Assembly (NCBI GenBank): GCA_964270895.1
Contig: OZ185442.1
DNA: 64,000 nucleotides
DNA from: Podarcis filfolensis
Lineage: Eukaryota
Direction: 5' to 3' (one strand)
The notes below the pieces were generated by a model. That model was not told where the DNA came from. It saw nothing but the letters and a program-made list of their open reading frames with translations, and did not search any database. This document shows positions 43,360-64,000 of this stretch, piece by piece (position 1 is the first letter of the stretch; every line of letters begins with the position of its first letter). Both the position numbers and the translations under genes were made by a program.

Positions 43360-44890
43360 ACTCCCGAGTAAACGTGCGGGGAGGGGGGGTGGCGGTTGGG
43401 CAGCAGTCCGACCTTGCGCACAGTTTTCCCAGCAGCAAGCCCCGGGAAAGTAAGTGCGCCCACTAGGACCACGGCAGCCGTGCAGCGCGCGTTTACCGGG
43501 GCATCCCTCCCCGCTGCTTTTCACGGGGCCCGACCCCCCCGACAGTTTCACGCGAGGTGGGGAGGGAATCCTGGCGGCCCGCCCCGTCCACGCGCCCACC
43601 GCTCGCCCGCCCAGCCCTTGACGCAACCCCGTGGCGGGGGCGGAGAGAAGCTCCGGCGCAGGCGTCCTGCGCGCCTCTATTGTCTCTCCTCCGGCAGCCG
43701 TCAGGAGGGCTGGCTAGCCGGACGGACGGAGGAACAGGCGGGAGGGAGCCCGCCAGCGAGGACACCCCCGCCCCCGACGGAAAGCGGCGCCTGGCCGAGG
43801 AGCGACGGGGACGCCGGCAAGGCCGCGCCGAGGCAGCCCTCGGGCAGGCAGGGCGGCAAGGAGAGCCAAGGGAGGGCCTGCGCTCGCTCGCTCCATGGCT
43901 GGCCGGGGCGCGCCTTGACGGAGCCCGCAGCAGCTGGGGCTGCTGTTCCTCCTGCGAGAGGCCGGCCTCGCCTTCCCCGCGCTTCGCCTGGATGCGGAGC
44001 GGCAGCGCCAGAGGACCCGCGCACAGAGGCCGGGGCCCCAGCGGCGGCGGCGGCGGCGTCTTTCTTCCGTAGGGCGGGCCCCGGAGGCGGGGCAGCGCTG
44101 GCCCTGCTGCCTTGTCGCCGTGGATGAGCCCGGGAGCAGCAGCGGGCCGCCCGGTGGGGCGCGGCGTCGGACGGCGGCTGGGGCTGTTGCTGCTTGCGCT
44201 CGGAGCGAAGGAGGAGCGGCGGCGGCCGGAGCGGCGACGACGGCCGGGAGAGGATGCCCGGCTCCGGGGGCCGCTTTAGCTCCTAGTCCCCGGCGCGGGT
44301 GCCCCTGCTCGACCTCCCCGTCCACGGCGCTGCCGCCGCCGCCGCCAGCGGCATGGGCGGCAAGCAGAGCACGGCGGGCGCAACGGCCACGGGGCGCTCC
44401 CGGGGCGGGCCCTTGGCCGGCGTGTCGAGCGACGACAGCGCGGTGCCGCCGCCCGGGGGAGCCCCCCACTTCGGGCACTACCGGGGCGCGGGCGGCGGCG
44501 GCGGCGGAGGGCCCGCCATGGGCTTGCGCAGCCGCTCCGTCAGCTCCGTGGCCGGCGTGGGCGTAGGGCTGGGCATGGAGCCCGCCGCCGCCGGCAGCGT
44601 CCCCTTCGGCCTCTACACGGCGGCGGCTGCAGCAGGGGCCACCACCACCACGACAGCCGCGGCGGGAGCAGACTCGGAGCGGGGTCCCGGCGGCGGGTCG
44701 GGCGCGGACTCTACCCCTTACGCCCATGGCAACGGTTTCCAGGAGACGGGAGGCGGTCACCACAGAGACGGGATGCTCTACCTGGGGTCCAGGGCCTCGC
44801 TGGCTGATGCGCTGCCTCTGCACATCGGACCCCGGTGGTTCAGCTCGCACAGCGGTGAGTGTGCTTGTCCCCACGGTCTTGTTTCCGGGC
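43360..44890. promoter_or_regulatory. ZNRF1 CpG island (promoter, 5' leader, exon 1)
   Basis: About 1.5 kb of very GC- and CpG-rich sequence with GC boxes, ending just after the exon 1 donor. Confidence 0.9.
44353..44854 (+). CDS. ZNRF1: ZNRF1 coding exon 1 (167 codons + 1 nt; MGGKQS myristoylation motif)
   Basis: Kozak ggcATGG; translates MGGKQST...HHRDGMLYLGSRASLADALPLHIGPRWFSSHS; donor G|gtgagt. Confidence 0.97.
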
Positions 44891-45387
44891 CTCCTTTCAG
44901 ACAGTCATGGGGAACCCCAAGGCTCTTCATAAAAGGAGAAGGGGAAACTGTGCATGAAATACCACCCTGCAACATATCTATAGCATCATTTATTTATTTT
45001 TTGAGGGGGACCCAAATGCATCCTCTTGCCCCAAACCCAAGGCCAGGGTCCCATTAGGTAGGCAGCAAAGATGTAGGCTTATCTGTGGTGAACTTGTCTT
45101 GCGCTTGGAGGTTCTAAGGGTCAAGTTTGCTGACACTTGAAGCCCTTGACTGGAGATTCAGAGTCCTTTGTTTTAAAGAAGGTGAGGGTGGCTGTTGTCC
45201 TTGCTTGGTGGTGGTGAGGGAAAGGTTTACTCTGAGCATGTTTAGAAGCATGCCTGTGCTCAAGGCCTGGCAAGTAGGTTTCATTTGTTTATATAATTTA
45301 TGAAAGTACTTATAAATGGTATGTAGAATATCAATGCAGCATACAACCACATTTACAAGTCCCAAAAAGCATTAAATACAATATACA

Positions 45388-45946
45388 ACCATAGAATGGT
45401 AAGGGATCCAAAGGGTCATCCAGTCCAATTTCCTGTAATGCAGGAATCACAGCTCAAGAATCCCTGACAGATAGCCATTCAACCTATCTTTAAAAACCTC
45501 CAATGAAGGAGATTCCCATCAGCTTCCAAGGGAGTCTGTTCCATTGTTGATCATGAGAAAGTTATTTCTAATGTTTAGTCAGAATCTCCTTCCTGGTTAT
45601 TTAAATCAGTTGGTTTGGGTCCCTGCTTTCTGAAGCAGCAGAAAACAAGCTTGCTTTGTCTTCCACGTGACAGCTTTTCAGATATTTGAAGATGGCTTTC
45701 AGATCACCTCTCCGATCTTCTCTTCTCCAGACTAAACATGCCCAACTCCCTCAACTCCCTCACAACCACTCATAAGGCTCGGTTTCCAGGCCATTAAAAA
45801 TCCTGGTCACCCTACTCTGTACATGTTCTAGCTTGGCAATATTCTTCTTAAACTGTGGTGCCCAGAACTGGAGACAGAACTCCAGGTGAGGTCTAACCAA
45901 GGCAGAATAGAGCCGTACTGTTACAGTACTTCCCTTGACACACTAT
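45388..45946 (-). mobile_element. CR1 LINE 3' fragment with terminus
   Basis: ccatagaatggtaagggatccaaagggtcatccagtccaa terminus plus RT C-terminal sequence. Confidence 0.85.
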
Positions 45947-46065
45947 AGGTTCATAAAATGACTGGCTCATCTTTGAAAAGTTTATATCAGCAAATAAGCC
46001 TTTTGACAGGAGCAGCAGTGATTTGGGGTCAGTTTGTGCCCAGGCAGCACTTTGGAGTGCCCACC

Positions 46066-46106
46066 TGTTTGTTTGTTTGTTTGTTTGTTTGTTTGTTTGT
46101 TTGTTT
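46066..46106. repeat. (TGTT)10 microsatellite
   Basis: Perfect tetranucleotide run. Confidence 0.95.
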
Positions 46107-48393
46107 CTGTTTAGGGTTGGGGTGGGGCCTGCTTTAGACATACAAGGAGATGCACCACTATTTAAGTGGTGTTTCTTTCCTTTCCCCCCATAGGAGCCCA
46201 GGGAAGCTAATAAAAACTGTACAAATAGAATTGTCAAACAATAATTTAACCCCAACTATAGAATAACAGTAACGCTTCAACTGTTGAACTCCACTCCAGC
46301 TATTGTTGAATTGACACTGTGACTTGCCTGGTGTAGCAGCTGAGGAAGTGATTACTGGGGTGTGGAGAGACTAAGGTAACGACCTGTCCTTTCTTACGGA
46401 TGGCTGGCTATGGCAGTTTTGCAAGTATGGTCTGAGGCTTTGGCACATCACCTATCAATGCAAAAGAAAGCTGCCCAACAGACCGTGTTATTATTTATTA
46501 AATTTATATACTGCCCTTCAAAGATCTCAGGGCAGTTCACAAGATAAAAATGGTAGTTCTCTTGATTAATGGACAGTATTTTTCTTTTCCTCTTGGGAAA
46601 AGAGCAGGCTTTCATTGTATTCTCCCCCACTCCACCTCTCCCTCTGTTTTGGATTAAAGCTAGAAGGGGAATGTAGTAACTTGCTTTCTCACCAATATAA
46701 GAAATGATTTGCAGCTTGTGGGCTCCCTTTGGGCATCTTGATGACCCATTATGTGCAGAATACTGGACTTAAATGGGCCTTTGGTCTAATCCAACAGATT
46801 TTTTGTGGAGCATGTTAACTTAGGGCTGTGTTTAATTGGAACAGATTTTAGAGTTGCAGGAATGTATGGCCTCTGTAAGCTGTTAAGAAGTTATGGTAGG
46901 TAATTGAGGGTGATTTTAGTTTTCAAATCTCACTCTTTGTTCCTTACCAAATTACCTGAGCCTGGGCACTTGTGGTTAGTATGCAAGACACAGAGAATGA
47001 AGATAAGATCTGTGGGGCCTTGGAAAGTGGTATTTGGGCCTACTGCCCTCAGAGGTGTGTAGAACACATATTTGATAACTCATCTGGTAGAATTCTAGAT
47101 AGGTGAGCACCCCAAACAACTGGGGAGGCACCAGGTTAGCGAAGGCCATTTTAAGGGGAAGCTGAGAAAAGAAATTATCTGGGATGGAGAGTACAGAGAT
47201 TTACAGTCCTGTCTTCTACATGTGAACTTGGAGGCAAGTCCTGGTAGGTTCCATGGGGTAAACTCTGATGTGTGTGTTCATAGTTTCCCTTCCACTGTGC
47301 TGCAGGGAACAAGTGATGTAAAGATGAAGCAGTGCCTCCTAGCAAGGCAATTTGCAACCAGGTTCTGTCAGGAAGTGGAGGAAGTCCCTTTCATCTTGCG
47401 AGATATTTTAGTCATCTATCTGTTGCCTGCCTAATTGATTAAAATATCAATTAGGCTAAATGATACAAGCAAATCTGATGAGTCCTGGTGCTTTCCAAGC
47501 TCATCTTCTTCCCTGTTAAATATATTTGCTACTTTGTTTTGCTTTGTCACCCTTGCCAATCAAATTCCTTCATAGTTAATGTAGTTCCTCTCCAAACCTT
47601 ATGACCTGTCTTGTTTAAGAGCAGCAATGCTATATTTCTGTTTTTACAAAAGAAGAGCTCCATGTAACTGAGAAGCTTTACCATTTCTAATATTGCTCCA
47701 TTCGTGGTGTCTCAGTTGGTCTGTGTGTTTTGCACCTCTGCAAGAGCAGTATGGCTACCAAGACATGCACAGAACCAACATATTATACTGCCAGTACAGA
47801 TTTGTGGTTAGTTGATGCTAATTTTCTGTGGACCAGCTGGCACAGACAAATCATGTATTGTTTGGAAAATAATTGCCTGGACCAAGTGGAGTGCATAGAT
47901 TGTTTACAGCCACGATGTCGTCTTCACAGAGTGCAGCTCAGAGAGAAATTATTTAAAACCCATGTATTCTGTGTCCAGATAATTAGGTTAATCTTCCAAT
48001 TAATGCTTTCCATCACCTTGATATTTCCCTGAACAGCAGGGGGCTTTTCTGCTTGGCTGTATCTGTGTTGCAATATTCTTGATACCCTATTGCTGGAGGG
48101 GGAAGCTTTTCTTCCAAGGGGGGAGGGGGAGCGGGAGCACTGTGAAGGTCACAGCGCACGGGACTCATCTCCACCTCACTGGCTGCCTTTACATCTCTGA
48201 CAGAAGATATCTGTGTTCATGGCTGTAAGTTCTTGGATAAAAAGCAGTGGACAGCTCCCACAAAACCTTAGTTCCTTTGCAATGTAATTGCAGCATTGCC
48301 TTGTGTAGCATTCAGAAGGCTGGCTCTTGAATTCACTTATAACCGCCCTGGGTATTTATTTTATTTTATTAATTTACTCTGGAAAACTCATGA

Positions 48394-48576
48394 AAAGCTG
48401 CCTTACATCAGCTCAGACAGACTGGTGATCCATCAGTATTGGCGACACTGACTGGTAGCAGCTCTCCAGGGTTTCAGATGGGGAACATGCATTCCCAGTC
48501 CTACCTGCTGATGCTACAGATTGAAGCTGGGACCTTTCATGTGCAAAGCGGATGGTCTACCTCTGAGCTACAGCTC
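48394..48576 (-). mobile_element. tRNA-head SINE (Squam2-like)
   Basis: Reverse complement begins gagctgtagctcagaggtaga... and ends taaggcagcttt. Confidence 0.7.
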
Positions 48577-49078
48577 TTCCCCGTTTACTGAAGGTGGCAT
48601 GCCTGGGTTCCCCAGGGTTTCCCATCTAGGTGCTGACCAGCCCCAGACCAGTTTGGCTTCAGCAAGGCTGCTGCATCAAGCTCCTGAAAGCCTGAGTTAG
48701 TTACTACTACTTGATTCTTTGCCTGGGAGACCAAGTCCCAGTCCCCCATTTCAAGCATCTTTATCAGTCACTTTGGTGGACTCCCCAAACTCAGCCTTGC
48801 CAATAAACTGACAAAGGAGAACAGCCCACAAACTAGTAGTTCACCTGCCTGCACATGCCCAAGTTTAGTCACTTGTGACCTAAAAGACAGGTGGAGGGCC
48901 CGGCGTTTCCAGGGAAGTGTGTTGCTTACTACAGGTTTCCAGGCAAGTGGCTATTTATAAGCCAAACAGCTGGTAGCCCCTCCCTGAAAGGAGGCTTCAT
49001 TGCTAAAATGGAACTTGCAGAGAGCTGGGTTCAAGCAACTTTTCAAGGGTGGTTTCTCTTGCTCAATTGCCCTCCTTA

Positions 49079-49285
49079 AACATAAGAACATAAGAAGAGA
49101 CTGCTGGATCAGACCAAAGGGGGCCCATGTGGTCTTGCATCCTGTTTGTGCTGTGGTCAGCAAGACGCCTATAGGAAACCCATAAGCAGGACCCCAGTAC
49201 AAGAGCCCCTCTCTTTCAGTTTCCAGCATCTGGTATTCAGAAGCATTGCTGCCTCCTGCTGGGTAGGGACAGCATAGCCCATCTC
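49079..49285 (-). mobile_element. CR1/L3-type 3' fragment
   Basis: aacataagaacataagaagag..ctgctggatcagaccaaagg terminus. Confidence 0.75.
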
Positions 49286-51270
49286 GGCTTTTGGCTTGCC
49301 TTTTGCAAGGGCTTAGTCTCAGTGTTTGGGGCTAAGTCCTCAATCTAGCACTTTTCTTATGAAAAAAGTCACTTGACAATTGTTGACTGTCTCTAGGTGG
49401 GGCTTCCTTGAGCAGCTGTTAGAGCTGGGTCAACATCTGTTTGCTCAGAGCCAACTAACCTTTTCTTTGGATGTCTGTGGCAGCAGAAATGGGGCAGAGG
49501 TGAACATCTAGCTAATAAGACAGCAGACCTCCAAAAATGCAGCGTTCCTGTTTTTTAATTAGTCACAGTAGGCGTTGTAGTGGATCCATATGGGTGAAGG
49601 TTGTCAGACAAGTGGTTATGGCCATTTCTTCCCAGTGAGTAGTATGACAAGGGAAGTCTCTCTCTCTTTTTTTTAAAGAAAAAGATCAGTCTGCACACAC
49701 AAACACTAATTATCTGACCTGTTGAGCCAGTGTGTTTGAGGCATACCATTTACCATGGTATGCAACGGAAGTTGGGTCAACCTTGGCTTCAGGGCTTCAT
49801 CCTGTGAGCTTAGTCACACAATTGATAGAGGAGATGGTGCTTTTGAGCCATGTGGAGAGTGTGTTTTCCTCACCACTAAGTACCATAAAATGGTGGATTT
49901 GGAAGGGACCCCCAAGGGCCATTTAGTCCAATTCCCTGCAGTGCAGGAATGAAGCAACCACAGCTTGACCTCTTGCATCTAGGAGTGGAGGTGGGGAGCT
50001 GCTAGCACCACCTCCAAGAGAGATGCCTTGCTTCCATGCAGGTTCCTTGCACAGAGATATAGCAAGGCCTGAGCTTCCACTGTAACTGAAAGCTTATGGG
50101 TGTAGAGCAGTGTCGCTCCAGATCCTAGCATTGCTCTGATGGAAGCTCTGCTTACCTTGCATTGGAGGTTTGAGTGCACAAAACCAGTTGTAGACCCGCA
50201 AGTGCCTTGTGATCACCATTGAGGCAGTCCCGTTTGGTGGTTCCTTGTGCTGAGCTGTTGGACAAGTGGAAGCAACACTTGCCAACCTAGCCTTCTGCAG
50301 TGTGTCCCTGTGGTGTACTGGGGATTGCTTTACAGTACAAGAAACCGCATATGCACACTAGTGAGCCATAAATAGGTCTTTTAAAAAAGAACTTGTATGG
50401 AGTCTTCTCTCGAGCAAGACCTTCCACCAGCCTTCGCCAACCCGCCGCCATCCAACTGTTCTGCACCACAATTCCCATCATCCCCAGTCAGCACAGCAAA
50501 TGCTGGAGCGCACAGGCAGAGAATAACTTCCCTGGACTTGCAGTGGCTCTTCTCAGCCTTTCACAAAGTTGGAAACAGCCCTTCTGTGAGTAGAAGAGGC
50601 TCTCTTGGTTAATGGAAGGGCACCTTTGGATCCAAGCTGTTATCTTTGTTTAAAAATGTATTCTTATTGTGTAACTACCAAGGCTGGTGGTGTTATTGGA
50701 GATGTGAATGGATATGGGTCTCGGGAGAGAGGGTTGGCCTTGGGTCTGGATGTGAAAAGGGCACTGTTATTATTGTTTATAGTTACCACTGTTTATGTAC
50801 AGTGTGCCAACTTCCTTATAGATTCAGGGCATGATCTGAAGACCCGTGATGCAGCAACTGTAGGCCAGGTCTGGTCAGCTTCTGGGATGGGTGATTGCTT
50901 GGAAACAGTGGTGGATTTTGGGCTCTCAAATTCCAGTGTCACCCTGGGTGCTGCTAAAATTCAGCATCCCCCACGTCTAGTGGTCCATTCTACAGCATTG
51001 TTTTGGCACCCTCTGCAGCATGGTGCTCTACCCTATAATTCCCTCTGCTAGAAAACCCTTGGATAGTTTGCCTTGAGTTCTATAGAAGAAAGGAAGGAGG
51101 TAAAAAGCTTCCTGATAGGTATTTAGAGAATGGATTCGGTTGCTGGTGCATAATCAAGTTATAGATTTCATCAAGATAATGTGCAGAATTCTAACTTTAT
51201 ATGGGGTGTCCAACCTCTCAGCTACACACACACAGCCAGCCATCAAAAGCACATTTGCTGAAGAGTGTTA

Positions 51271-51496
51271 AGCTGGTGTAGCATAGTGCTGGAGTGTTTG
51301 ACTAGGCCCTGGGTTCAAATCCCCATTCAACTGTGAAGCTCACTGGGTGACCTTGGACCAGTCACTGTCTCATAGCCTAACCTACCTACCAGGGTTGTTG
51401 GGATGGGGTGGGGGTGGAGGAACGAAGGCATGCCAGTTTGAGCTCCTTGGAGGAAAGGTGGGATAGAAATCAGATGGATGGATAAATAAATATAAA
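51271..51496 (+). mobile_element. Older Squam3-like SINE
   Basis: B-box gggttcaaatcccc, gctcactgggtgaccttgg core, aggaaaggtgggata...taaataaa tail. Confidence 0.75.
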
Positions 51497-52559
51497 GGCT
51501 TTGTGAACTAGATGTGAAACATGGGTATACCACTGGCATAGCTGTGCATTTCCTTGCTTGGAAGAAGGGGTTGCATGTGGAGCAGGAGGCAGCAGGAGTG
51601 TCCTTGGCAGAAAAAGAAAGGAGACAGGAGTCGTCTACTTTCACATAGCAAGGCCGTTTCTGGGGTTTCTGTTTTCAGCATCTGTGCTCTGCAGGAAGCA
51701 GCGGCTTGTGTGTGCGGCTTAATACTTCCTATGGGAAAGGAAATGAACAGCCTGCCAAGAGAAGCTGCAAGCTGATCATTACCTGTTTGTTGTGAACTCA
51801 TTGGCTGCACCTGGTGTGCCAGATACCACCGTTTCTGAAAATTGCCTCATTTAGAGAGTCACAACCCTCATCTTAAGACGGGGCTCTTCCTATGAAGCAA
51901 GGCTGGGGAACCTCAGGCCCTCCAGATGGGACTCACATCATTTCTGGCCAAGGACTCTTCAGGCTGAAGGTAGACATAATATGGAAGGGGGACATGACTC
52001 CTGCAGTGAAAGCCCAGCTTTGCTATGTGTGGGACAATACATTCATTTTGTCACGCCTAATGGCAATCTTGCTACACTTCTCCCCAATCTTCAGGTGGGC
52101 TGCTTGCCTTGCAGAAAGCAACATGCTCATACAAAAAGCTGTATTTTTCCACTTTTATGAAGTACACATTCATTTTTAAACACAAATATCTGGCAACGGA
52201 GAGGCCTTGGTATCATGAGTGGTAGCTGTTGAAGTGGTTTTGGCAGCAGCTCACCTTTGCTGCAAACCTTCAGGAAGTTTGTTCAGCTTCTGCCCTGGAG
52301 AGGGCAAGTTGCATTTGGGCAGAATACGGCATCATGCGTGTCTCCAAACAGGCACCGCTGCTTTGCAAATGATGCATCTTTCTAAGGTAATGTTGAACCA
52401 AGATTCAAGACTGCTGCCTGGTTCCATCCAAATGTACAGCTTTCGGTTTGAATGTACAGCTGTAAAACATTTAGGCCCGAACCCTGCATGGGCTGAGTAC
52501 AGCACATCATCAATCAAATGAGCACATTGGGAGACCCCTCACAGAGATACAATTCGCAG

Positions 52560-53080
52560 AGTAGTTTAACAATCAATCCCTCTTTCAGGAAACTCCGGGA
52601 ATTGTAGTTCTGTGCAGCAAATGGGGTCTCCTAACAACTCTCAGCGCCCTTAACAAACTACAGTTCCCAGAATTCTTGGGGGGAAGCCATGACTGTTTAA
52701 AGTGGTATTAAAGGTAAAGGTAAAGGACCCCTGACAGTTAAGTCCAGTCGCGAACGACTCTGGGGTTGCGGCGCTCATCTCGCTTTAAAGGCTGAGTGAG
52801 CTGGCGTTTGTCCGCTCCACAGACAGTTGTTCCGGGTCATCTGGCCAGCATGACTAAGCCGCTTCTGGCACAACGGAACACCGACACCAGAGCAGCGCAC
52901 CTTCCCGCCGAAGCAGTACCTATTTATCTACTTGCACTTTTTGGGGTGCTTTCGAACTGCTAGGTTAGCAGGAGCAGGGACCGAGCAACGGGAGCTCACC
53001 CCGTCGTGGGGAATCGAAATGCCGACCTCCTGATCGGCAAGCCTGAGAGGCTCAGCGGTTTAGAGGTGTGGATGTGGCCT
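52560..53080. mobile_element. MITE of a related family interrupted by the Sauria SINE
   Basis: aactacagttcccagaattcttggggggaagccatgactgtttaaagtggtat | SINE | ggtgtggatgtggcc; a second uninterrupted right end lies at about 53265-53407. Confidence 0.65.
52709..53064 (-). mobile_element. Sauria SINE (Squam1/POM type), slightly 5'-truncated
   Basis: (AAAGGT)n tail followed by gacccctgacagttaagtccagtc; tRNA-like B-box at the other end; matches the recalled family pattern. Confidence 0.85.
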
Positions 53081-53982
53081 TGTCTTTTCTTGGCCATGTG
53101 CCTTTCCTACTGTGCATTTTGTGAGTTGGCAATTTTTACTGTTCTTCCCCCTCTGCGCAATTGGTGTTACTACAGTTTTGGTTGTATTGGGTGTATTTTA
53201 TTTTTTACCTCAGCAATTTCCTCCTTAGTTTGCCCTGTGTGTGTGCTTTTGTGTTCCTTTTGAAGAGGGATGGATTGTTAAACCATTCTGAGAACTGAGC
53301 AATTATCAATGCCTTTAACAAACTACACCTCCCATAATTCTTTGAGGGACGCCATAACAGTTTAAAGTGATACGGCAGTCCTGTAAATATGTGGTGCAAA
53401 TATGGCCTGGATGCCTTTCAGTTCTTGTGGAGCAGCTCCTTGGACCTTTTTTCAGCAGGTGGCAGCTGAGCAGATGCCATTTTATTCTTGTCTCAAGAAT
53501 GAGAGTTCTGTAAGTAGTTGATGCATTTGCAGCAGCTGGGAGATTCTACCCACTAGGCGAATTTGAAACCTTAATGGTGCACAGAGGGATTTCTCGGGAG
53601 TGTTTGAAAGGAATGAGAAGCAAAATGTATAAGAGAGCTTCCTGAGTACAATTGTGGCAGTGGTGGCCTTTCTGCCACATCACTGCTGGCTGAACATTTC
53701 CTCCATGAGAGGAGAAATATCCCCTGACTCTCTAGAAGCATTTATTTATTTTGGAGATAAAGATTCTGCATCTTCTTTTTCCTTGGCCATCAAGCCACTG
53801 CTTTGAACCTTTTAACAAGGTTGAACCAACCATTCTTCGCCCACCACAAAATGCCAACAACCTTGCAGGTGCATTTCTCAATGTTATTGAGCACCAGCCA
53901 GACATGCCCTTCATTTGCTTACCTTTCTTTCCCCTCCCTTCCCTGGTGTGATACTGCTTCCTGCAAACACATTGTACTGGCA

Positions 53983-54198
53983 GAACCAGTGTGGCATAGT
54001 AGTTAGAGTGTTGGACTAGGACCCAGGAGACTAGAGTTCAAATCCCCACTCAGCCATGACTTTGCGCCTGTCCCTATCCCCTAAGCCTGACCTTCCTCAC
54101 AAGGTTGTTGTGAAGATAAAGGGAAGGGGGGAGAATTATGTACAACCACCTTGAGGTCCTTGGAGGAAAGGTGAGATTAAAATGTAATAATAAATAAA
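53983..54198 (+). mobile_element. Older Squam3-like SINE
   Basis: ccagtgtggcatagtagttagagtg A-box, gagttcaaatcccc B-box, L2-like tail. Confidence 0.75.
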
Positions 54199-54946
54199 GC
54201 ATAGACCCCTTTTTAAATTCTTTTAATGTAATTTTATTATTGTGAGCTTCCCTAGCTGCTTACTTCATAGAGAAAGAGTACCATAAGTTGTCAGTTTGAA
54301 ATAGATAAAGCAATTTCATGTTTGGCTTGTTTCTGTGTGCTGCTAGAGTGGTTTAGAGCAGCAGGCCTCAGGTTGCCTATAATGGACAGCTTTGGCTGCT
54401 TGGTTTAGCACCTGGAGGCTGGGAAGTCAGCCACTTAGGGACCTACAAAATACAGGTCACTTCCTGTCTGCATTGCTGTGCTGTTGTAAACACATGTGCT
54501 GGTTGGCCAACCCTAATTCCACACTGAACTGTGGTCACAACTTGCATTGCAGTTTTGAGGGCAAGTGTAGGTAATGCAAAGTGCATGAATGGATCTGCTA
54601 TGGCCAGTGTGTATGTATCAGATGACATTGGATCACTTTTGCGCACTAAGGAGGGCCTTTACAAAAAATCCATGCTTAAGATTCCAGTTTAGCACTGAAG
54701 ATTTCCATGGAGAAGTAAATTATATGCCTGCTCGCATAACACAGCTGATCCCTGCTGTTCTGGCTATTTTTGGAGGTGTGATCCTCTCCACACAGAGGCA
54801 GGGGTCCATGCAGGTTTGGCTTGGTTTGGAAGTAAGGAGGAGCGGAGAAGTTCTGGGAAAGATGTGGGCATCACCACTGCTGTGTTCCTGAGTCAAGGGG
54901 ACCCACCTTGCTTAGTGCTTAGAGTGCAAGGTATCCTAACATATTG

Positions 54947-55128
54947 TTTATTTACTGCACAGATATCCCACCTTTTCCTCCAAGGATCTCAAGGTGACAT
55001 ACATGGTTCTCCCCTTCCTCATTTAATCCCCACAACAACCCTGTGAGGCAGGTTAGGCTGAGAGGCAGTGACTTGCCCAAGGTCACCCAGTGAAGTCCCC
55101 TGGTCTCCCAAGTTCTAGTCCAACACTC
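54947..55128 (-). mobile_element. Older Squam3-like SINE
   Basis: Reverse complement of the same core (cacaacaaccctgtgag...ttaggctgaga...caaggtcacccag). Confidence 0.7.
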
Positions 55129-58100
55129 CGGCAGCTTTTAAAAAGCAGCTTGCTAGGATTACACAGAGCTTGCAGAAGGTGAGGAAAGCCAGCCCCCAGC
55201 AGGAAATCGGGTTAGGTTTCCTGTGTATGGATCAGGCTTCATATGGGACAAGTGGGAGTTGTAGTCCAAAACATCTGGAGGCAAGATTGTGATGGATGGG
55301 TGGTGTTGGGACATCCATAAGTTGATGACAAAGTTATTGTAGCCTTGAATTGGGAATCCAGGAAATGAAGGCTTCTAGGAAACCAGTTTGCTTTGAAATT
55401 GAACTTGAGCTGTCTGGCATATCAATAAATTCTATTTTTACAGGGTGCTGGTGCTTCTTTTCTCTGCCCTCCCTCTCCCCATTGCTTACTCAGAATATTA
55501 TGCTTAAAAATAACAAAATCCACAACAATCCTCTTAGATCCTCTTTCTTTTAGTATGTTAATTATTGTGTATATTTTGTCCTTTCTTAGTCAATCAAGTT
55601 ACCTCTTATAAAATAAACATATTTTTTTAAAAATGAAGCCGATTGCTCAGTATACCCCCAACCCCCTTGTTTACAAATTACTTGTTCTCTGCTGTGTGCT
55701 TAGTATTTTCCTTGTTACAGAAGATGAACAGGTCCATAATTTCCTGAATTACCTTTGTCCCTAAAGGGCTGACAGTGGCCTGTAACAAGATCTGGGTCTG
55801 TTAGGCAATATGAATCTCTGACCCGGAAGGACTTGCAGCCAGATTTAGTACTGAATGAGAGAAAGGTGTTGGCGAAGGGCTGGGGCATAAAGGGCATGAG
55901 ACTTAAGTTACTGCAAGCAGGGGCATGGGGTGAGATTCAGTGCCTTGTTGCAGCAGCCCTGTTTGTTGTTCTTTTCCTTTTACAATCCAAGGTGGTTAAC
56001 ATGAGAAGCACAGAATGCAAGAAAACTAATAAGAATAAGGAGCCAGCAGGTTAAAAACCACCAAATACCAGCATAAAAAATGTAAATTTGATCTGTGGGA
56101 GTGATACTGATGTAAAAAGGCCTATGTAGTACAGTCAAGCTTTTAAAAGGTCAAAAGCCTTTTAGTACACACAGATCTTACTGGCTTTCCACTGCAATAT
56201 CAACACAGATCTCCTGCCCAGGCAAGGAGTCCCAGAGCAACAAAACAATTGTGAGCTTCGTAAGCTCCCTCAGATCTCTCGCTCATAAACCAGATCCCGT
56301 TGGTGGAGAAAATGGCCCGCTTTAATCACCATCACATCTTTGGAAAAGGCTTTCTTTTGCCTGCTGTTTCCCAACAAGCTGATCACTTATTGCATCACAG
56401 ATTACCTGTCTGCGCACAGCCCCTGTCACACAGGCATCTGGTTAGCCTGAGCCTGCAATTCTTATGGGTGATGCTGTAATGTTGCTGCACACATTCAGCA
56501 TAGGGTGTGTGTGTTATTGGGTTGTTTTTGTTTTTATTTTGATTATTAATTTTGTGTTTTCATATTGTGTTATTATCTTGGGAACCGCCATGAGACCTGC
56601 GGGTCCAGGGCAGTATACACATTTTAATAATAATCTTCATGCTGCAGTTAAAATAGCCACCTATTGATGGAATGTGACAGCACCTTACATTTTTATGTAT
56701 ATAGGAAGATATATACAGTACATATAATTATCATTATTTAGTTGGAGGTCACTTTATACAATTATAACTTTAAAATGAGTGTTTTATACATGATAAAACT
56801 CTAAGCCATTTACATAAAAACAATAAAAATACAGCAACAATCACTGACATTTGCATCCATTTGTTGTGTCTGCTATAGAGCAGGGGAGGGCAGATCATCA
56901 CGATTATTTATGATTATTATTATATCTCATATTTCTTCCAAGGCATTCAGAGTGGCATGCATAGTTCTCCCTCTCTCTGTTTTAGCCTCACAACAACCCT
57001 ATGAATTAGGTTAGGCTGAGAAAGAGTGACTTCCCTGAGAGTTTTGTGGGAAAGAATGTCAGAGGCCGGCTTCTGCTTCAGTGATGAGCATGTGGTTCTT
57101 GGTATATTGGATAAGGATTTTTCCTTAATTTATTTAAGCGATTTTTATATTGCTTAACTGCAATCGTCTCTAAGCAGCGTACAACGAATACAGTATGGAA
57201 AAGGTAAAAATCAGTTAAAACTTTAAAATCAGACTTCAGTTAAAATGCCTGCTGGAATAATAATTAAAAAAAATCAGTAAGACACCGAAAGTTCAACAGG
57301 GAGTGGGCCAGTTGTAAATACTGGTAGCTGCTTTGAGGGCTGTAGCTGAGAAGCAGGAAATAAATCTATTAAATATATAGCAGAACCAAATCTATCTTCT
57401 ACCCACTCCTGCGACACAACAGTATGCTCTTGACACTGAGCTGTGACACAGGGTCTTGCCTGTAGTTGTTTACCTAAGTCAGAAAGGTACCTACTGGGTT
57501 GTGTGTGTATTTCTGCTGTAAAGGGCTGACAATAGATAGGATGATCAGAAGTGTCTTTAAGCGTGACAAGGGATGTACTGCCAAAGGGATGATTTGTTGG
57601 AATGTAAGTCTGCCATCCAGTGTTGTGCATCTGGTTGTCAACAAGCATGATTAATCCTGCTTGTGGGTTTCCCATAGGCATCTGGTCGGCCGTTGTAGGA
57701 AACCGGATGCTGGACTCGCCAAGCCATTGGTCTGATCCAGGGGGGCTTTTTAAATTGTCCCTTAAGAAATGTATGGTGTGCAGACCATCATGGAGATCTC
57801 CAGATGACTCCTTTAGCAGATGGCTCCTTTACCATCATATCACGGCACCATGGCTTTTTCCTGCTCGGAGGCCAAAGAAAGGTCAGCATTGCTGTGGGCT
57901 GTATGCACGTGGTGGTGGCTGTGATGGCACCACTGTGCAAAACCTAAATAAACTCTGCCTGGGCATGCCAAGACCTTGTCCCTGGGCTACTGGCCAGCAT
58001 TCCAGCCTGTGCTCATCACCTGCGGGTGTCAGTCAAAGCAGCGTCCTAGCCCTGCCCTTAGGGGAATATAGCATGCTGTTGACATGGGCTGTTGGCTTTT

Positions 58101-59002
58101 TTAAAAAGAGTATGTGCATCCTTATTTTTATCCTGTGTCCCGATCCCAGATTGTGGCAGAATGAGCAGCCTTTGTTTGAACTTGCACTTCAGGCGAAAGC
58201 AGCGCTGAGCTTTCCCCTCTTGGATGCTCTTTCCCTCCCATTTTGAGGGGAATCTCCTTTCCTGCTCTTGGACTGCTCACACCTCTTTGCGTGTTCCAAG
58301 GAAGCAGGAGTTGGGAGTCATAGTGTGACAAGTCAAGGTAGCTTATCCTGAAATAAAATGTACAGGTAAATGGTGGTGGTGGGTAGTTAGCCATGCACTC
58401 TGCATGCTTACCCCAAAATCACTCTCACAGATCCGATGCTCCAGCTGCACTTGGTTATGCTGTGGGAACTGAAACTCACAGACCTTGTTGACAATGGCTG
58501 TTTCACTTCTGCAATTAGTCCAGCAACAATCCTGAGACAAAAAGGGGGCTGGAGACTGCGTCTGAGGATGTTGAGGGCTTGAGGGCACAATTAACGCACA
58601 GTTAGCAAAATATGCATGTACACCAGGAATTGGATAATATAAATTTGGATTTTGTTGCATGTGCTGTGGCTACCACCCTCTGATCATGTCTCTCCCTCCC
58701 TGCCCCGCCCAAAAATCAAAATAAAATCCCAGATCAGCCCACCACCGAGAGACAGACTTTACTTTTCCAATTGATCTGGATAAAAGTTGAAACCAGAAGA
58801 ATTAATCTGTTTCTTGAAAAGCAGATAGAGCTGAAGTGGGAAAGAGGGTCAATCTTCCAAGTTGCTCCTTCAGCATCTTTGTACTTCTCAGGGGACAAAG
58901 GGGTAGCCATTCTTACACACCTCATGACTCAGGGGGCAGTGAGTTTGTAGGGACTCAGAGGCCTTGAGGATGTCAAGAGTGGTATGGTATGCACGGCCGC
59001 GT

Positions 59003-59332
59003 ATTGGCAAGCCCTAATAATACACACACGTGTAGCATAAGGCTAAGTCAGCAATTAGACTCGCCAGTAGGCCCATCAAGTCAAAGCAAGTATTTTGCCT
59101 TCCCAAGTCTATGCTGCTAGTGCCATCCTTTACCAGAACTTTAAGCAAGATGGCAGCAGCACAGGCACCAAGTTGCACCCAACATTGGGGGTGACATCCC
59201 GCCAAGCCTCCTCTGGCCTCTAAGATTGGGGCCGGGGGGCTGAGTCCCATCCCAGCAGACATTTGGGGGGGGGAGCTATAGAGGCCTCAGCACCATAGAG
59301 TTGGCGGGCCTGGGCAGCAAGGACATTGAGGG
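59003..59332 (-). repeat. Unclassified dispersed repeat, copy 2
   Basis: Inverted homolog of 7064-7372 with small insertions. Confidence 0.85.
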
Positions 59333-60231
59333 CAGAGGCAGCCAGCATCTGTCTCCAGCCACCTTTGTGCCAAAAGATTGCGTGTCTGCATACTGGTTGA
59401 TTTCTTGATTAATAAAAGGACTGAGGCAAGTGTGTTGCTTTCAGGGCTGTGTACATCTGCATTTGGATCTGGGAGGAAAAAGATAGGCTTCAGAGCTATA
59501 AAAATAGAGGATGGTTGCTGGGTGACAGAAACGAGCCGCTCCTGGTTGCCCAGGTGAAAGCCAATATCACGTGTCAGTTGTCTCTTCCTCGTCAGCTTGA
59601 GTTTGTTTTCAATGGCATTTTCGTTGCTACGTGGCTGGCATAATGTGTGCATCAGCCTGGACTGCAACCTGCTTCTAAAAGGGTATGGAAATACTTTGTG
59701 TCTCGAGGCACACTGGCTTGTTGATGTTCCAAGTCTGTGTGAGAACCGGGAACAAAATGTTTGCCTCCTTTAGAGTAGCTGCAAGTGATGCTGTGGCATC
59801 CCTGAAAATGATCTCCCCAACAACAACACTAACATGTCAAAATGGTCTGTACAGTGTGACGCTTAGGTGTCTAGAATGTCAGCCATGAAAGTGTTCAGCA
59901 TCTCTTAGGTGTCCATGTTGTAACTTCTGGGTTAGCTGTATTTCACCAATAATGCTTCTTCAAGAATTAAAACTGTGTAGCTTTAGCTTCACCACTTTTT
60001 GAGCTCACCTCTTTTTTTGTGCAACTGTGGTCTGTGGTCTGCGAGTGATCCATGAACTTTGATCAGGTGATCCCTATCATGTCTGCAAATATACCATAAA
60101 AAATCATACCGCATCAAGCACAGTGCAGTACAGTTGATGCTGCAGGTCTGCCAACCACAGCTGTATACCATACAGTTGTTGCAAGATTCATATCCTGAAA
60201 TGTGGATTTTAAGGGGTGCAGGGAACACTGC

Positions 60232-60235
<4 letters not shown>

Positions 60236-60273
<38 letters not shown>
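60236..60273. repeat. (AC)19 microsatellite
   Basis: Perfect dinucleotide run. Confidence 0.97.
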
Positions 60274-60274
<1 letters not shown>

Positions 60275-61212
60275 GAGCTTGGAACTATCGTATGGAAAAT
60301 TCTAGATCAGGCTCATTTTCATATCCCTTTAATTGATAAGTTACTAGAGATTTAATTGATTGGGGAGTGCAGATTGTAATAAATAGAGCTGCAAGCAACT
60401 AGTTTGTTTATTTGTTGGAACCACTTTAAACTTGCTATATTAGTGAAGTGAAAAAGAGAGGGAAAGATATTGCGAGAAGTGTACAGAAACTAAAAGCTTT
60501 AAAAGGTTTTTTTACAGCTTAAAACACTTTCAACTGTTATAAACATAGTCTTTTGTAATATGCAAAAGCTTTTATGATATGCAGAATTATTCTAATCAAA
60601 GTTATTGTCTGCTTTTTAACAGAGCATTTAATCTTCTGAAAAGTCTTTAATTGGCTAGCAGCCCTTATTTCCACACATCCTAATGAGGGCTTTTAAAACG
60701 GGAACAGACCTTCCTCATTATCCCACAGCTAGAAGAACTATTGATCTTGCAAAATTGTAACAAATATATTTAAACAGCCTCCCATGGCTCAGTTTGTAGA
60801 AATCCCCACTTTCTTGCCCCACATCTCTGAGTTCCTGAAAACTGAAGTTCCTGATGGGGAGGGTCCATGTTTGCTACATAGCTGCAGAAAGGGGTAGCTT
60901 TATGGATTAGCATTATTTAGAGTGGCCTTCCCCAACCTGGTGCCCTCCAGTTGAGGCCATGATGGGAGTTGCAGCTCTAAGGCTCTTGAGGGTATCCAGC
61001 TGAGGCTGAGTGTTATCTCTGAAGGTTCCCAGGTGACATTAGCCATTGCCTCCAAAGGCTTATGCCATGCAGAACACTTCCTTGGGGGGCATGGGTGAAG
61101 GAAGCGGGGAGTTTTTTCCTTGGCAGTTTGTGACAGGCATAAGAGGGCATAAAGGTAAGCAGTTCCTGCTGTGCTCACTCAGGGCACCTGGCATCAGAAA
61201 CCATTATTCGTA

Positions 61213-61454
61213 CAGTGGTACCTCGGGTTAAGTACTTAATTCGTTCCGGAGGTCCGTTCTTAACCTGAAACTGTTCTTAACCTGAAGCACCACTTTAGCT
61301 AATGGGGCCTCCTGCTGCCGCTGCGCCGCCAGAGCACAATTTCTGTTCTCATCCTGAAGCAAAGTTCTTAACCTGAGGTACTATTTCTGGGTTAGCGGAG
61401 TCTGTAACCTGAAGCGTATGTAACCTGAAGTGTATGTAACCCAAGGTACCACTG
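61213..61454. mobile_element. Tc1/mariner (Tigger/pogo-type) MITE
   Basis: TIR CAGTGGTACCTCGGGTTA vs CAGTGGTACCTTGGGTTA (17/18); TA at 61211-61212 and 61455-61456; internal TAACCTGAA repeats. Confidence 0.92.
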
Positions 61455-63037
61455 TACTGCGTTGATTGACAGTCCTTAGTGTTAACCTTAACCTGCCCTG
61501 GCTCTTTCTACTCTTGTTCCTCTGGTCCCGTACTAGGAATAAGTTCCCATTTGGGAGCCTGTCCAGCAATTTCTTTCTTAGCCTGGGGACTTGACAGGCT
61601 GAAGCTTTTTTTTTTTCACTTGGAGAGAGATGTGTGTCCAAGAGGCAAACTTTTGGACCCATTGCACTACTATATTCCATGTTTGATAGAAAAGCATAAA
61701 ATTTCTGTAGCCAACTGAATGCAGGGGGTTGCTGTTGTTTTCTTGGAAGCGCACATTTAATTTTGCTTCTGACTGGACTAAGAATGTTCATCTCTAGACC
61801 CAGCTCAAGTGAGGCATTCACAATAAAAATGAGTACTGCTCTACAGGTTTACTTTTTGTTTTATTTTGTGTGTTTCTAGTTCATGTCTCTTTTGTAGGTT
61901 TATGTGAAATGAATTTGAGTTTTCAAAAATATTGTTATTAAGGGAAACTTAAAGGGAAAAATACGCCTCCACAGTTTGCACGACCCATAAAGACAGACAC
62001 AACCTATCAGTCATGTATTGTGGCCCACCAGGTATTTGGCAACTATCCTGTGATCCTAGTCCAGGAAAACAGCAAACACTGGAGTTTTGTAGGTCCCCTG
62101 ATAAGCTGGGAATTGCTTGGTGCGTCACCAATTGTGTAGGCCTGATATAGATTTATGGTATATATGTTCATGGTAAGAAATAGAGATATTTGTAAGACTC
62201 GTAATGTGACTTTATTTTCTACCTGTCTTGCTAATATTCCTCCTAAGAGCACTAAACTTCTTTCATGGGCAAAGGCCAGCCATATGTCCTGGTTCTTCAG
62301 GGAGAAAACAACAGAGCATCTTGTCACCCCTTAAATACAATGCTGCAATAAACTTGTTTGTCTTTAAAATGCTTCAAGACTCTAGTTTTGCTGCAACCCC
62401 TTAGCTTAGGCTAATTCTCTGGAAACATTCATAGGGGGCATCCAGGATCAGGTGCTGCCTTTGCTCATACGTGAGCATGAAAAGATTGCGCTTGCTTGCT
62501 TCTTGTTTTTCAGGAAAGCCTTGTGGCATATTCCAGAGTTCTCTCCTTCCGTGTCCTGTCCTTCCTTCCTGTGCCCTCTCTGACTGCAGCTGTCTGTCTC
62601 ACGCGGCCGAAGGGCAGCGCAGAGGCATTTCTTGGGAGGTGCACGTTCTTTCCCTCTGTGGTAGAAAGATGCCAGGCTGGAGAGGGCCTGGCCCATGAGA
62701 CGTTTTTGAGCATGTTAGGAATACAGTTACAAAGTCATCCACAAAGAAAATGATTACAGAGCAGTTGCTCGTATGCAGAAGGTCCCAGGGTCACTCTTGA
62801 CGTGTCCAGATAGGGCTGAGAAAGGGTTTGGTTTGGTTATGGAAATCAAATCTGGCACTCTTTCAGCTGCACCTTCCCTTACAGGGTTGCCTGACATTTA
62901 GTACATGTGACCTCAGTGAGATTTTAACTTCATGTCAGGTCTGACTTGGCAGGAGGCGGCTTCCTGTGTTCCTAAGATGGTGTCAGAGTCAGCATCCCTC
63001 TCTAATCCACATGTCCTTCTCTTTTGCTCCTTTGTAG

Positions 63038-63133
63038 GTTTCAAGTGCCCCATTTGTTCCAAATCCGTGGCTTCCGACGAAATGGAAATGCACTTTATCA
63101 TGTGTCTGAGCAAGCCCCGCCTCTCCTACAATG
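63038..63133 (+). CDS. ZNRF1: ZNRF1 exon 2 (zinc finger: FKCPICSKSVASDEMEMHFIMCLSKPRLSYN)
   Basis: Pyrimidine tract + tag acceptor, gtaagt donor, 96 nt, phase 1/1; intron 1 is 44855-63037. Confidence 0.97.
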
Positions 63134-64000
63134 GTAAGTGGGGGCTTTTGAGCCCCATCTGACTTGCCTGTTGCCACCTTGTGTTCTTAACCAGCTCACC
63201 TTTCTCAGCATCTTTCATGCAAGCCCAAGGGTGAACAACCAGACTTGGCTGGGACTCCAGCTCCCACCAACCCGAGCCAGCATGGTCCAATGGTCAGGCA
63301 AGGTCAGAGTTGTAGGCAAGCAGCAGCTGAAGGCACCAGATTGCCCAGACCTGAGGTCAGCTGTCCAGCAGCGAGCGTTGATACACCATGTCGCGTTCTT
63401 CCAGCCTGGGCTTTTGGTGACGTCACCTGTGCTCCTCAGAACTGTGTCGGCTTATGTGCTAAAAAATACAGAGAGAAGTATTAAAAACTGCTGCCTGGAA
63501 AAATAAGTACTAAGCCATTTTTTACGCAATGCACTCTCAAAAGATGCAAACTGAGTTTCTGGGATTTCCCCCACACCTGCTTAAATTCTTCTGAATTAAC
63601 TCTGCAGCCATAAGGACTAGAAACTCTACAATAGAAGGCTTTTATGTACTGGGTATCAAATCCTGTTCTTAGATAGTGTTGATTGTGAGCTCATTGTGGG
63701 GGGTGGGCATGCACTGCCCTCCTTTTGCTGCTGGAGCAAAGGCAGTAGTCTAGCGCTTGGGTGGGTGAGTGTGCATGCATGCATGGTTGGTATAGACCAG
63801 GAACCCCAGGTGATTTCTTCAGCCTCCTTTGCAGAGCCAGTGACCCGCTTCCCTCGCTCAGGGCACTCGCTTGCTTTCTGCTTCTCACACAGAGAGCAGT
63901 GCAGGCTTTGCTCAGGGCTGCTGCAGTCACTGCTTTGCAGCTCAGCTGGCTCTCAGCATGGCAAGGGGGCTGGCTGCTCTCTCCCGCCCCCCAGGAGTGA

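Follow-up and report, generated by a model that had tools for sequence, protein, structure and literature searches.

The window, which is the whole 64,000-nt stretch of lizard DNA analysed here, holds coding exons 1 and 2 of ZNRF1 on the + strand (Table 1). ZNRF1 is a known gene that is already annotated in other lacertids. Coding exon 1 consists of 167 codons plus one base and is followed by a GT donor at 44855-44856, and its product shares 98% identity with the annotated ZNRF1 of Podarcis muralis. Gly2 of the N-terminal MGGKQS sequence presumably provides the N-myristoylation-type start that is typical of ZNRF1, the role of myristoylation being putative here. Intron 1 ends with the acceptor sequence ...tttgtag directly 5' of position 63038. 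Stranded RNA reads from organism D, a close relative, cover exon 1 in the orientation expected of a + strand transcript, and 31 reads leave the 3' end of exon 1 and continue with letters that match the window from 63040 onward. ZNRF1 is therefore transcribed and correctly spliced in this close relative.

Table 1. Coordinates of ZNRF1 features within the window
Feature	Position	Strand	Basis or remark
ZNRF1 coding exon 1	44353..44854	+	Translation; Podarcis muralis match; RNA reads
MGGKQS N-terminus, ATG at 44353	44353..44370	+	Translation; nearly invariant in alignment A1
Thr5 tract in squamate-specific Ala/Thr/Ser-rich low-complexity insert	44641..44655	+	Length varies among lacertids
Tyr123 (TAC), equivalent to mammalian Tyr97, kept	44719..44721	+	Sequence; residue numbering
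Conserved motif HGNG-F-QET around the site	44725..44748	+	Same flanking residues as in amniotes with Tyr
Codon 129, TTC (Phe), at the mammalian Tyr103 position	44737..44739	+	Sequence; reads
Intron 1, about 18.2 kb	44855..63037	+	tblastn match to exon 2; RNA reads
ZNRF1 coding exon 2, zinc-finger part GFKCPICSKS...RLSYN	63038..63133	+	tblastn; GT donor at 63134

Several features identify the gene as the ZNRF1 orthologue. The MGxxxS start is followed by the conserved blocks MGLRSRSVSSVAG and DGMLYLGSRASLADALPLH, all of which occupy columns that are invariant or nearly so in alignment A1, and the zinc-finger exon (GFKCPICSKS...MHFIMC) lies downstream of exon 1 and is joined to it in RNA. The RING exons are located past the end of the window, and the RING-H2 domain (Pfam zf-RING_2) is not within the 64,000 nt; PF13639 is present in the full-length ZNRF1 of four other lacertids, which are 98-100% identical over exon 1. 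In word searches, all gene-specific names among the matches were ZNRF1 and not its paralogue ZNRF2, while the remaining matches bear generic names (hypothetical protein, RING-type E3 ubiquitin transferase). Neighbouring genes in two other species, an FAD-oxidase gene downstream of ZNRF1 in Rhineura and a WD40 gene upstream of it in zebra finch, fit the usual ZNRF1 neighbourhood. The zebra finch WD40-repeat gene is large and is arranged head-to-head with ZNRF1, an arrangement that would be compatible with one bidirectional promoter region for both genes. A CpG island covers the 5' end of ZNRF1 in the window (43500-45000); its GC content is 73.7% and its CpG observed/expected ratio 0.91.

Phenylalanine at the position of mammalian Tyr103

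Work on mouse and human cells has identified Tyr103 of ZNRF1 as a phosphorylation target of EGFR (PMC4657170) and of c-Src (PMC10174191), and its phosphorylation activates the ligase. The Y103F protein is not phosphorylatable and gives no rise in the ubiquitination of AKT or TLR3, and its protective effect on neurons is close to that of the RING mutant C184A (PMC4657170, PMC10174191). That phosphorylation by EGFR or c-Src raises the activity of the ligase towards AKT or TLR3 was shown for the mouse and human proteins only (PMC4657170, PMC10174191). Papers on the ZNRF1 substrates caveolin-1 (PMC5472178) and EGFR (PMC8118649) did not figure among those found to mention Y103.

The residue that precedes QET is Tyr103 in the human and mouse protein entries, which were used for residue numbering only, and the upstream tyrosine is Tyr97; the corresponding residues of lacertids are Phe129 and Tyr123. 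In a MAFFT alignment of the window and 218 proteins, the columns of Gly126, Gly128, Gln130 and Gly133 are nearly invariant, so that the alignment of Phe129 to Tyr103 is unambiguous. The lizard gene thus has TTC at the codon where a ZNRF1 activated through phospho-Tyr103, as in human and mouse, has a tyrosine codon. The first-pass annotation had read Phe at residue 129, and both the sequence and the reads bear this out. Its offset of 26 residues agrees with the numbering of the pairs Tyr103/Phe129 and Tyr97/Tyr123, and the Y97-equivalent tyrosine that it described as retained is indeed present as TAC. The annotation was likewise correct that the natural residue of the lizard is that of the non-phosphorylatable Y103F protein used in the laboratory (PMC4657170, PMC10174191).

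Confirmation of the codon in reads and RNA had also been proposed, and four public runs were compared over positions 44200-45000 of the window, three of them DNA (as contigs) and one stranded RNA (as raw reads). Codon 129 is spanned by contigs of organism A from two studies (depths 28 and 10.5) and of organism B (depth 11.5), and the RNA reads of organism D have a depth of about 11 over 44713-44766. No differing letter was found at 44737-44739 in the contigs of organisms A and B, which represent three DNA samples, or in the RNA reads of organism D; differences elsewhere in 44200-45000 are listed for the same runs. Exon 1 is very GC-rich and contains simple repeats, a context prone to assembly problems, and one might suspect the Phe codon to be an assembly or sequencing error or to belong to a paralogue or a pseudogene. 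This explanation is extremely improbable, since three independent DNA samples and one RNA run concur at codon 129 and Phe is the residue at the site in four of four annotated lacertid genomes (Podarcis muralis, P. raffonei, Lacerta agilis and Zootoca vivipara). In addition, the frame is uninterrupted, splicing of the transcript is seen in the RNA reads, and the window also includes exon 2 further downstream. Both an assembly error and a chance reading can be dismissed for Phe129.

Compared with the window, the organism A contigs of both studies have the same four differences in 801 bases (44649, 44873, 44877 and 44955), and the organism A samples therefore come from a different individual or a very close relative rather than from the sample that was assembled for the window. 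Loose ends of RNA reads at 44328 (16 reads) and 44619 (14 reads) were considered as sites of splicing and rejected, as they lie in GCC or GC-rich repeats and lack an AG acceptor; they probably reflect cross-mapping of simple repeats. Short pieces of unrelated contigs likewise match 44328-44346.

Distribution of tyrosine and phenylalanine among vertebrates

The column of the site contains Tyr in 177, Phe in 31 and another residue or a gap in 11 of the 219 aligned sequences. Tyr is found in whale shark, houndshark, sevengill shark, sawfish and stingray, in sturgeon, paddlefish, gar, bowfin, coelacanth and most teleosts, in platypus, placental mammals and turtles, and in tinamou, duck, pigeons, penguins, raptors, owls and parrots. 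It is also found in 100% of the non-lacertid squamates sampled (boa, elapids, rattlesnake, five geckos, Tiliqua, Hemicordylus, Pogona, Salvator and Rhineura). The occurrence of Tyr in all these lineages implies, by parsimony, that it was present at the root of the jawed vertebrates and of the amniotes, and Tyr is on this reconstruction the ancestral state of both groups. The alignment of orthologues that the first-pass annotation had suggested for polarising the difference thus has Tyr as the ancestral residue. Among the options offered there was that the tyrosine switch is a mammalian innovation. In such a history, Phe or the absence of an acceptor would be the ancestral condition outside mammals, which would accommodate the lungfish, which has Phe, and the amphibians, which lack the motif. 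Tyr is, however, shared by cartilaginous fishes, coelacanth and turtles, by the actinopterygians outside the teleosts, by palaeognaths and most neognath birds, and by all sampled squamates other than lacertids, and this leaves a mammalian origin with practically no probability.

Phe is present in all lacertids sampled, namely Podarcis, Lacerta, Zootoca and the window, a sampling that represents the subfamily Lacertinae only. The NCBI taxonomy unites Lacertidae and Amphisbaenia as Lacertibaenia, within Laterata. The amphisbaenian Rhineura and the teiid Salvator both have Tyr, which places the change on the stem of the lacertids or at an early point within the family, and Phe would thus have arisen after the lacertid-amphisbaenian split. 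The codon context is GGT TAC CAG in Rhineura, in the cordylid Hemicordylus and in the parrot Strigops, and GGT TTC CAG in the window. The derived base is T at 44738 versus an ancestral A, a single A>T transversion that converts TAC to TTC and that is not favoured by GC-biased gene conversion. The first-pass annotation had spoken of a lizard loss. The change is neither peculiar to this lizard nor general among squamates: it is common to all four lacertid species sampled, and the other squamates sampled have Tyr.

The same substitution was fixed independently in passerine birds. All named passerines of the set have Phe, and these include both oscines (Taeniopygia, Lonchura, Zosterops, Malurus, Picathartes/Chaetorhynchus, Pachycephala, Cettia, Acrocephalus and Cercotrichas/Toxostoma) and suboscines (Pitangus, Myiozetetes and Willisornis). 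All other named birds except Rhinopomastus have Tyr, a group that comprises the parrots and at least 12 further non-passerine orders. In zebra finch the codon context is GGT TTC CAG, so that the nucleotide change is identical to that of the window. The exception, the scimitarbill Rhinopomastus cyanomelas, has Phe, with Gln>Pro beside it and two residues deleted, in a single draft genome, and it could be a real third loss in amniotes or a low-quality sequence.

Outside the amniotes, Phe is found in the lungfish Protopterus, in the mormyrid Paramormyrops and in the clingfish Gouania. It also occurs in the characiform Hoplias, the related Colossoma, Salminus and Astyanax having Tyr, and in the eel Synaphobranchus, where Conger and Gymnothorax have Tyr. 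One fish-like protein has Leu at the site and a pipefish has Cys, and the motif is missing in Cololabis, in Cynoglossus and in another pipefish. ZNRF1 from three orders of amphibians (Geotrypetes, Ambystoma and Spea) has lost the whole NGYQET motif along with both tyrosines; in Spea the later LYLG tyrosine is also replaced by Phe. Simple parsimony on the accepted taxonomy gives a minimum of eight independent Tyr>Phe events, in addition to several deletions. The phospho-acceptor is therefore ancestral to jawed vertebrates yet repeatedly lost, the lizard being one instance. Phosphosites commonly undergo single conservative substitutions in evolution, and the recurrence of this one makes the lizard case less surprising. 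A ZNRF1 fragment from Lemmus lemmus is without the motif region and ends in unrelated sequence, which looks like an annotation or assembly problem.

Conservation of the lizard protein around the site

From residue 125 to the C-terminus, a block of 129 residues, ZNRF1 is almost invariant in amniotes in alignment A1. Residue 129 is the sole difference between lacertids and Rhineura over residues 125-253, and the homologous residue is the sole difference between passerines and other birds in the conserved block of the same alignment. The HGNG and QETGGGHHRDG flanks are intact in both clades, except for a Gly>Ser change beside the site in one passerine group. No new tyrosine that might compensate for the loss is present in lacertid or passerine ZNRF1, the tyrosines of exon 1 being residues 43, 88, 123 and 143, and alignment A1 contains no other substitution in residues 125-253 that could serve as compensation. 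A block frozen to this extent, with no tyrosine gained, points to a ligase that is held by strong purifying selection and is not decaying. With the gene also transcribed and spliced, and the other 128 residues of the block unaltered, lizard ZNRF1 is evidently functional. Based on this conservation, we infer that the motif probably needs an aromatic ring, and not a hydroxyl group, for some role.

Unusual conservation of synonymous sites near codon 129 was considered and rejected, as lizard and finch differ synonymously at 8 of 43 codons in the block and at 7 of 31 in exon 2, a rate that is slow and not exceptional. An AlphaFold2 model of Zootoca ZNRF1, made from an alignment of 34 sequences, was poor, with a mean pLDDT of 38 and values of about 30 in the region of the site.

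The Ala/Thr/Ser-rich insert, which lies between FGLYT and DSER in alignment A1, is restricted to squamates and absent from birds and mammals, and it is about 30 residues longer in Pogona. The threonine tract within it has five residues in lacertids and four in Podarcis raffonei, and the compared runs have synonymous differences in the tract at 44643, 44646 and 44649. The Gly run at 44491-44511 of the window varies from four to seven residues among lacertids, with seven in the window and in Zootoca. Residue 38 is Pro in the window versus Ser in Zootoca.

Consequences for activation of the ligase

Lacertid ZNRF1 has very probably lost the Tyr103-type phospho-acceptor through a single TAC>TTC change, as one case of a recurrent loss. 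The A>T transversion at 44738 on the lacertid stem would have replaced the ancestral Tyr with Phe. Phe has no hydroxyl group, and residue 129 can therefore not be phosphorylated. Activation driven by EGFR or Src by way of phospho-Tyr103 should consequently be unable to operate through position 129 in lacertids, and the lizard ligase may work on its basal activity or on another input.

In other respects the lizard protein resembles mammalian ZNRF1 closely. It is an orthologue that begins with MGGKQS, as the mammalian proteins do, and its central block and zinc-finger exon are nearly identical to theirs. The RING domain of full-length lacertid proteins deviates only in the penultimate residue, and the motif surrounding the site deviates only in the acceptor. 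It differs in having Phe129 in place of Tyr103, so that the described phospho-acceptor is missing, and in having an N-terminal low-complexity region that is 26 residues longer (the Gly run and the Ala/Thr-rich insert). The residue at the site is the one that was introduced in the laboratory Y103F mutant, but the lizard protein, known here from its sequence, is a natural wild type that is conserved in the sampled lacertids and is not over-expressed against a Tyr-bearing endogenous copy. Passerine ZNRF1, as represented by zebra finch, shares with it an independent TAC>TTC change at the homologous codon as the sole change in the conserved block, although that change belongs to a separate lineage, after its split from the other sampled bird orders, and the passerine protein is without the squamate insert. 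Amphibian ZNRF1 (Geotrypetes, Ambystoma, Spea) also lacks a phospho-acceptor, but there the whole NGYQET motif has been deleted or replaced, whereas the lizard has a point substitution between intact flanks.

The literature presents phosphorylation of Tyr103 as the activating step in axon degeneration and TLR3 trafficking, on the basis of mouse and human cells only. The acceptor has been lost in the sampled lacertids, in passerines (a group of thousands of species), in amphibians and in several fishes, with the rest of the protein almost unchanged. A literature search on ZNRF1 gave no paper for lizards and a single unrelated one for passerines, with nothing on the Phe variant, and the comparative pattern, a natural Y103F that is fixed in sampled Lacertidae and Passeriformes together with recurrent loss of the acceptor elsewhere, appears to be unreported. 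The natural Y103F proteins offer ready material for studying how ZNRF1 functions without the switch and whether the motif has a role independent of phosphorylation. The pattern also advises caution in applying the mammalian mechanism to models of nerve injury in birds, lizards or amphibians.

Alternatively, the kinase switch could persist in lacertids in a shifted form, with the neighbouring Tyr123, the equivalent of mammalian Tyr97, as its acceptor. All lacertids keep Tyr123 and all passerines keep its counterpart, the upstream tyrosine is replaced by Phe in Pogona, Sphaerodactylus, Euleptes and platypus, each of which keeps the downstream Tyr, and none of the proteins in the set has Phe at both positions. 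The number of double-Phe proteins expected at these frequencies is below one, however, which deprives their absence of significance. The upstream position is not occupied by Tyr in fishes and sharks and was thus not part of the ancestral motif, and its replacement by Phe in Pogona, the two sphaerodactylid geckos and platypus tells against a move as well. Y103F, moreover, was not detected in mouse cells by an antibody raised against pY97/pY103 (PMC10174191). These observations weakly disfavour a move to Tyr123, which we consider unlikely.

The loss of the acceptor might also have been adaptive, blunting axon degeneration under oxidative stress or altering the down-regulation of TLR3 in lacertids and, in parallel, in passerines. 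It is in favour of selection that an identical substitution was fixed in two large amniote clades, each time as the sole change in the 129-residue block, and that an A>T change is not favoured by GC-biased gene conversion, the GC-rich island in which it lies notwithstanding. Phe is, on the other hand, the most frequent and most conservative substitute for Tyr and is reached by one nucleotide change, it recurs in scattered fishes and the lungfish, and the motif is deleted in amphibians. The pattern across taxa suits weak constraint on the hydroxyl group equally well as it does selection, and no trait is common to the lineages concerned. An adaptive loss with these effects is accordingly judged distinctly improbable. 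Slightly less remote, though still unlikely, is a selected loss by which lacertids and passerines rewired the control of ZNRF1 by oxidative stress or TLR3 signalling, the unphosphorylated motif having a separate essential role. Phe129 alone explains no lizard trait. The suggestion in the first-pass annotation that the substitution could matter for regeneration in squamates finds no comparative support and was rejected on the distribution among taxa: the tail-regenerating geckos and skinks have Tyr and the passerines have Phe, and the cyprinid fishes keep Tyr, while the axolotl and the lungfish are without the acceptor, as are a frog, a saury and a tongue sole.
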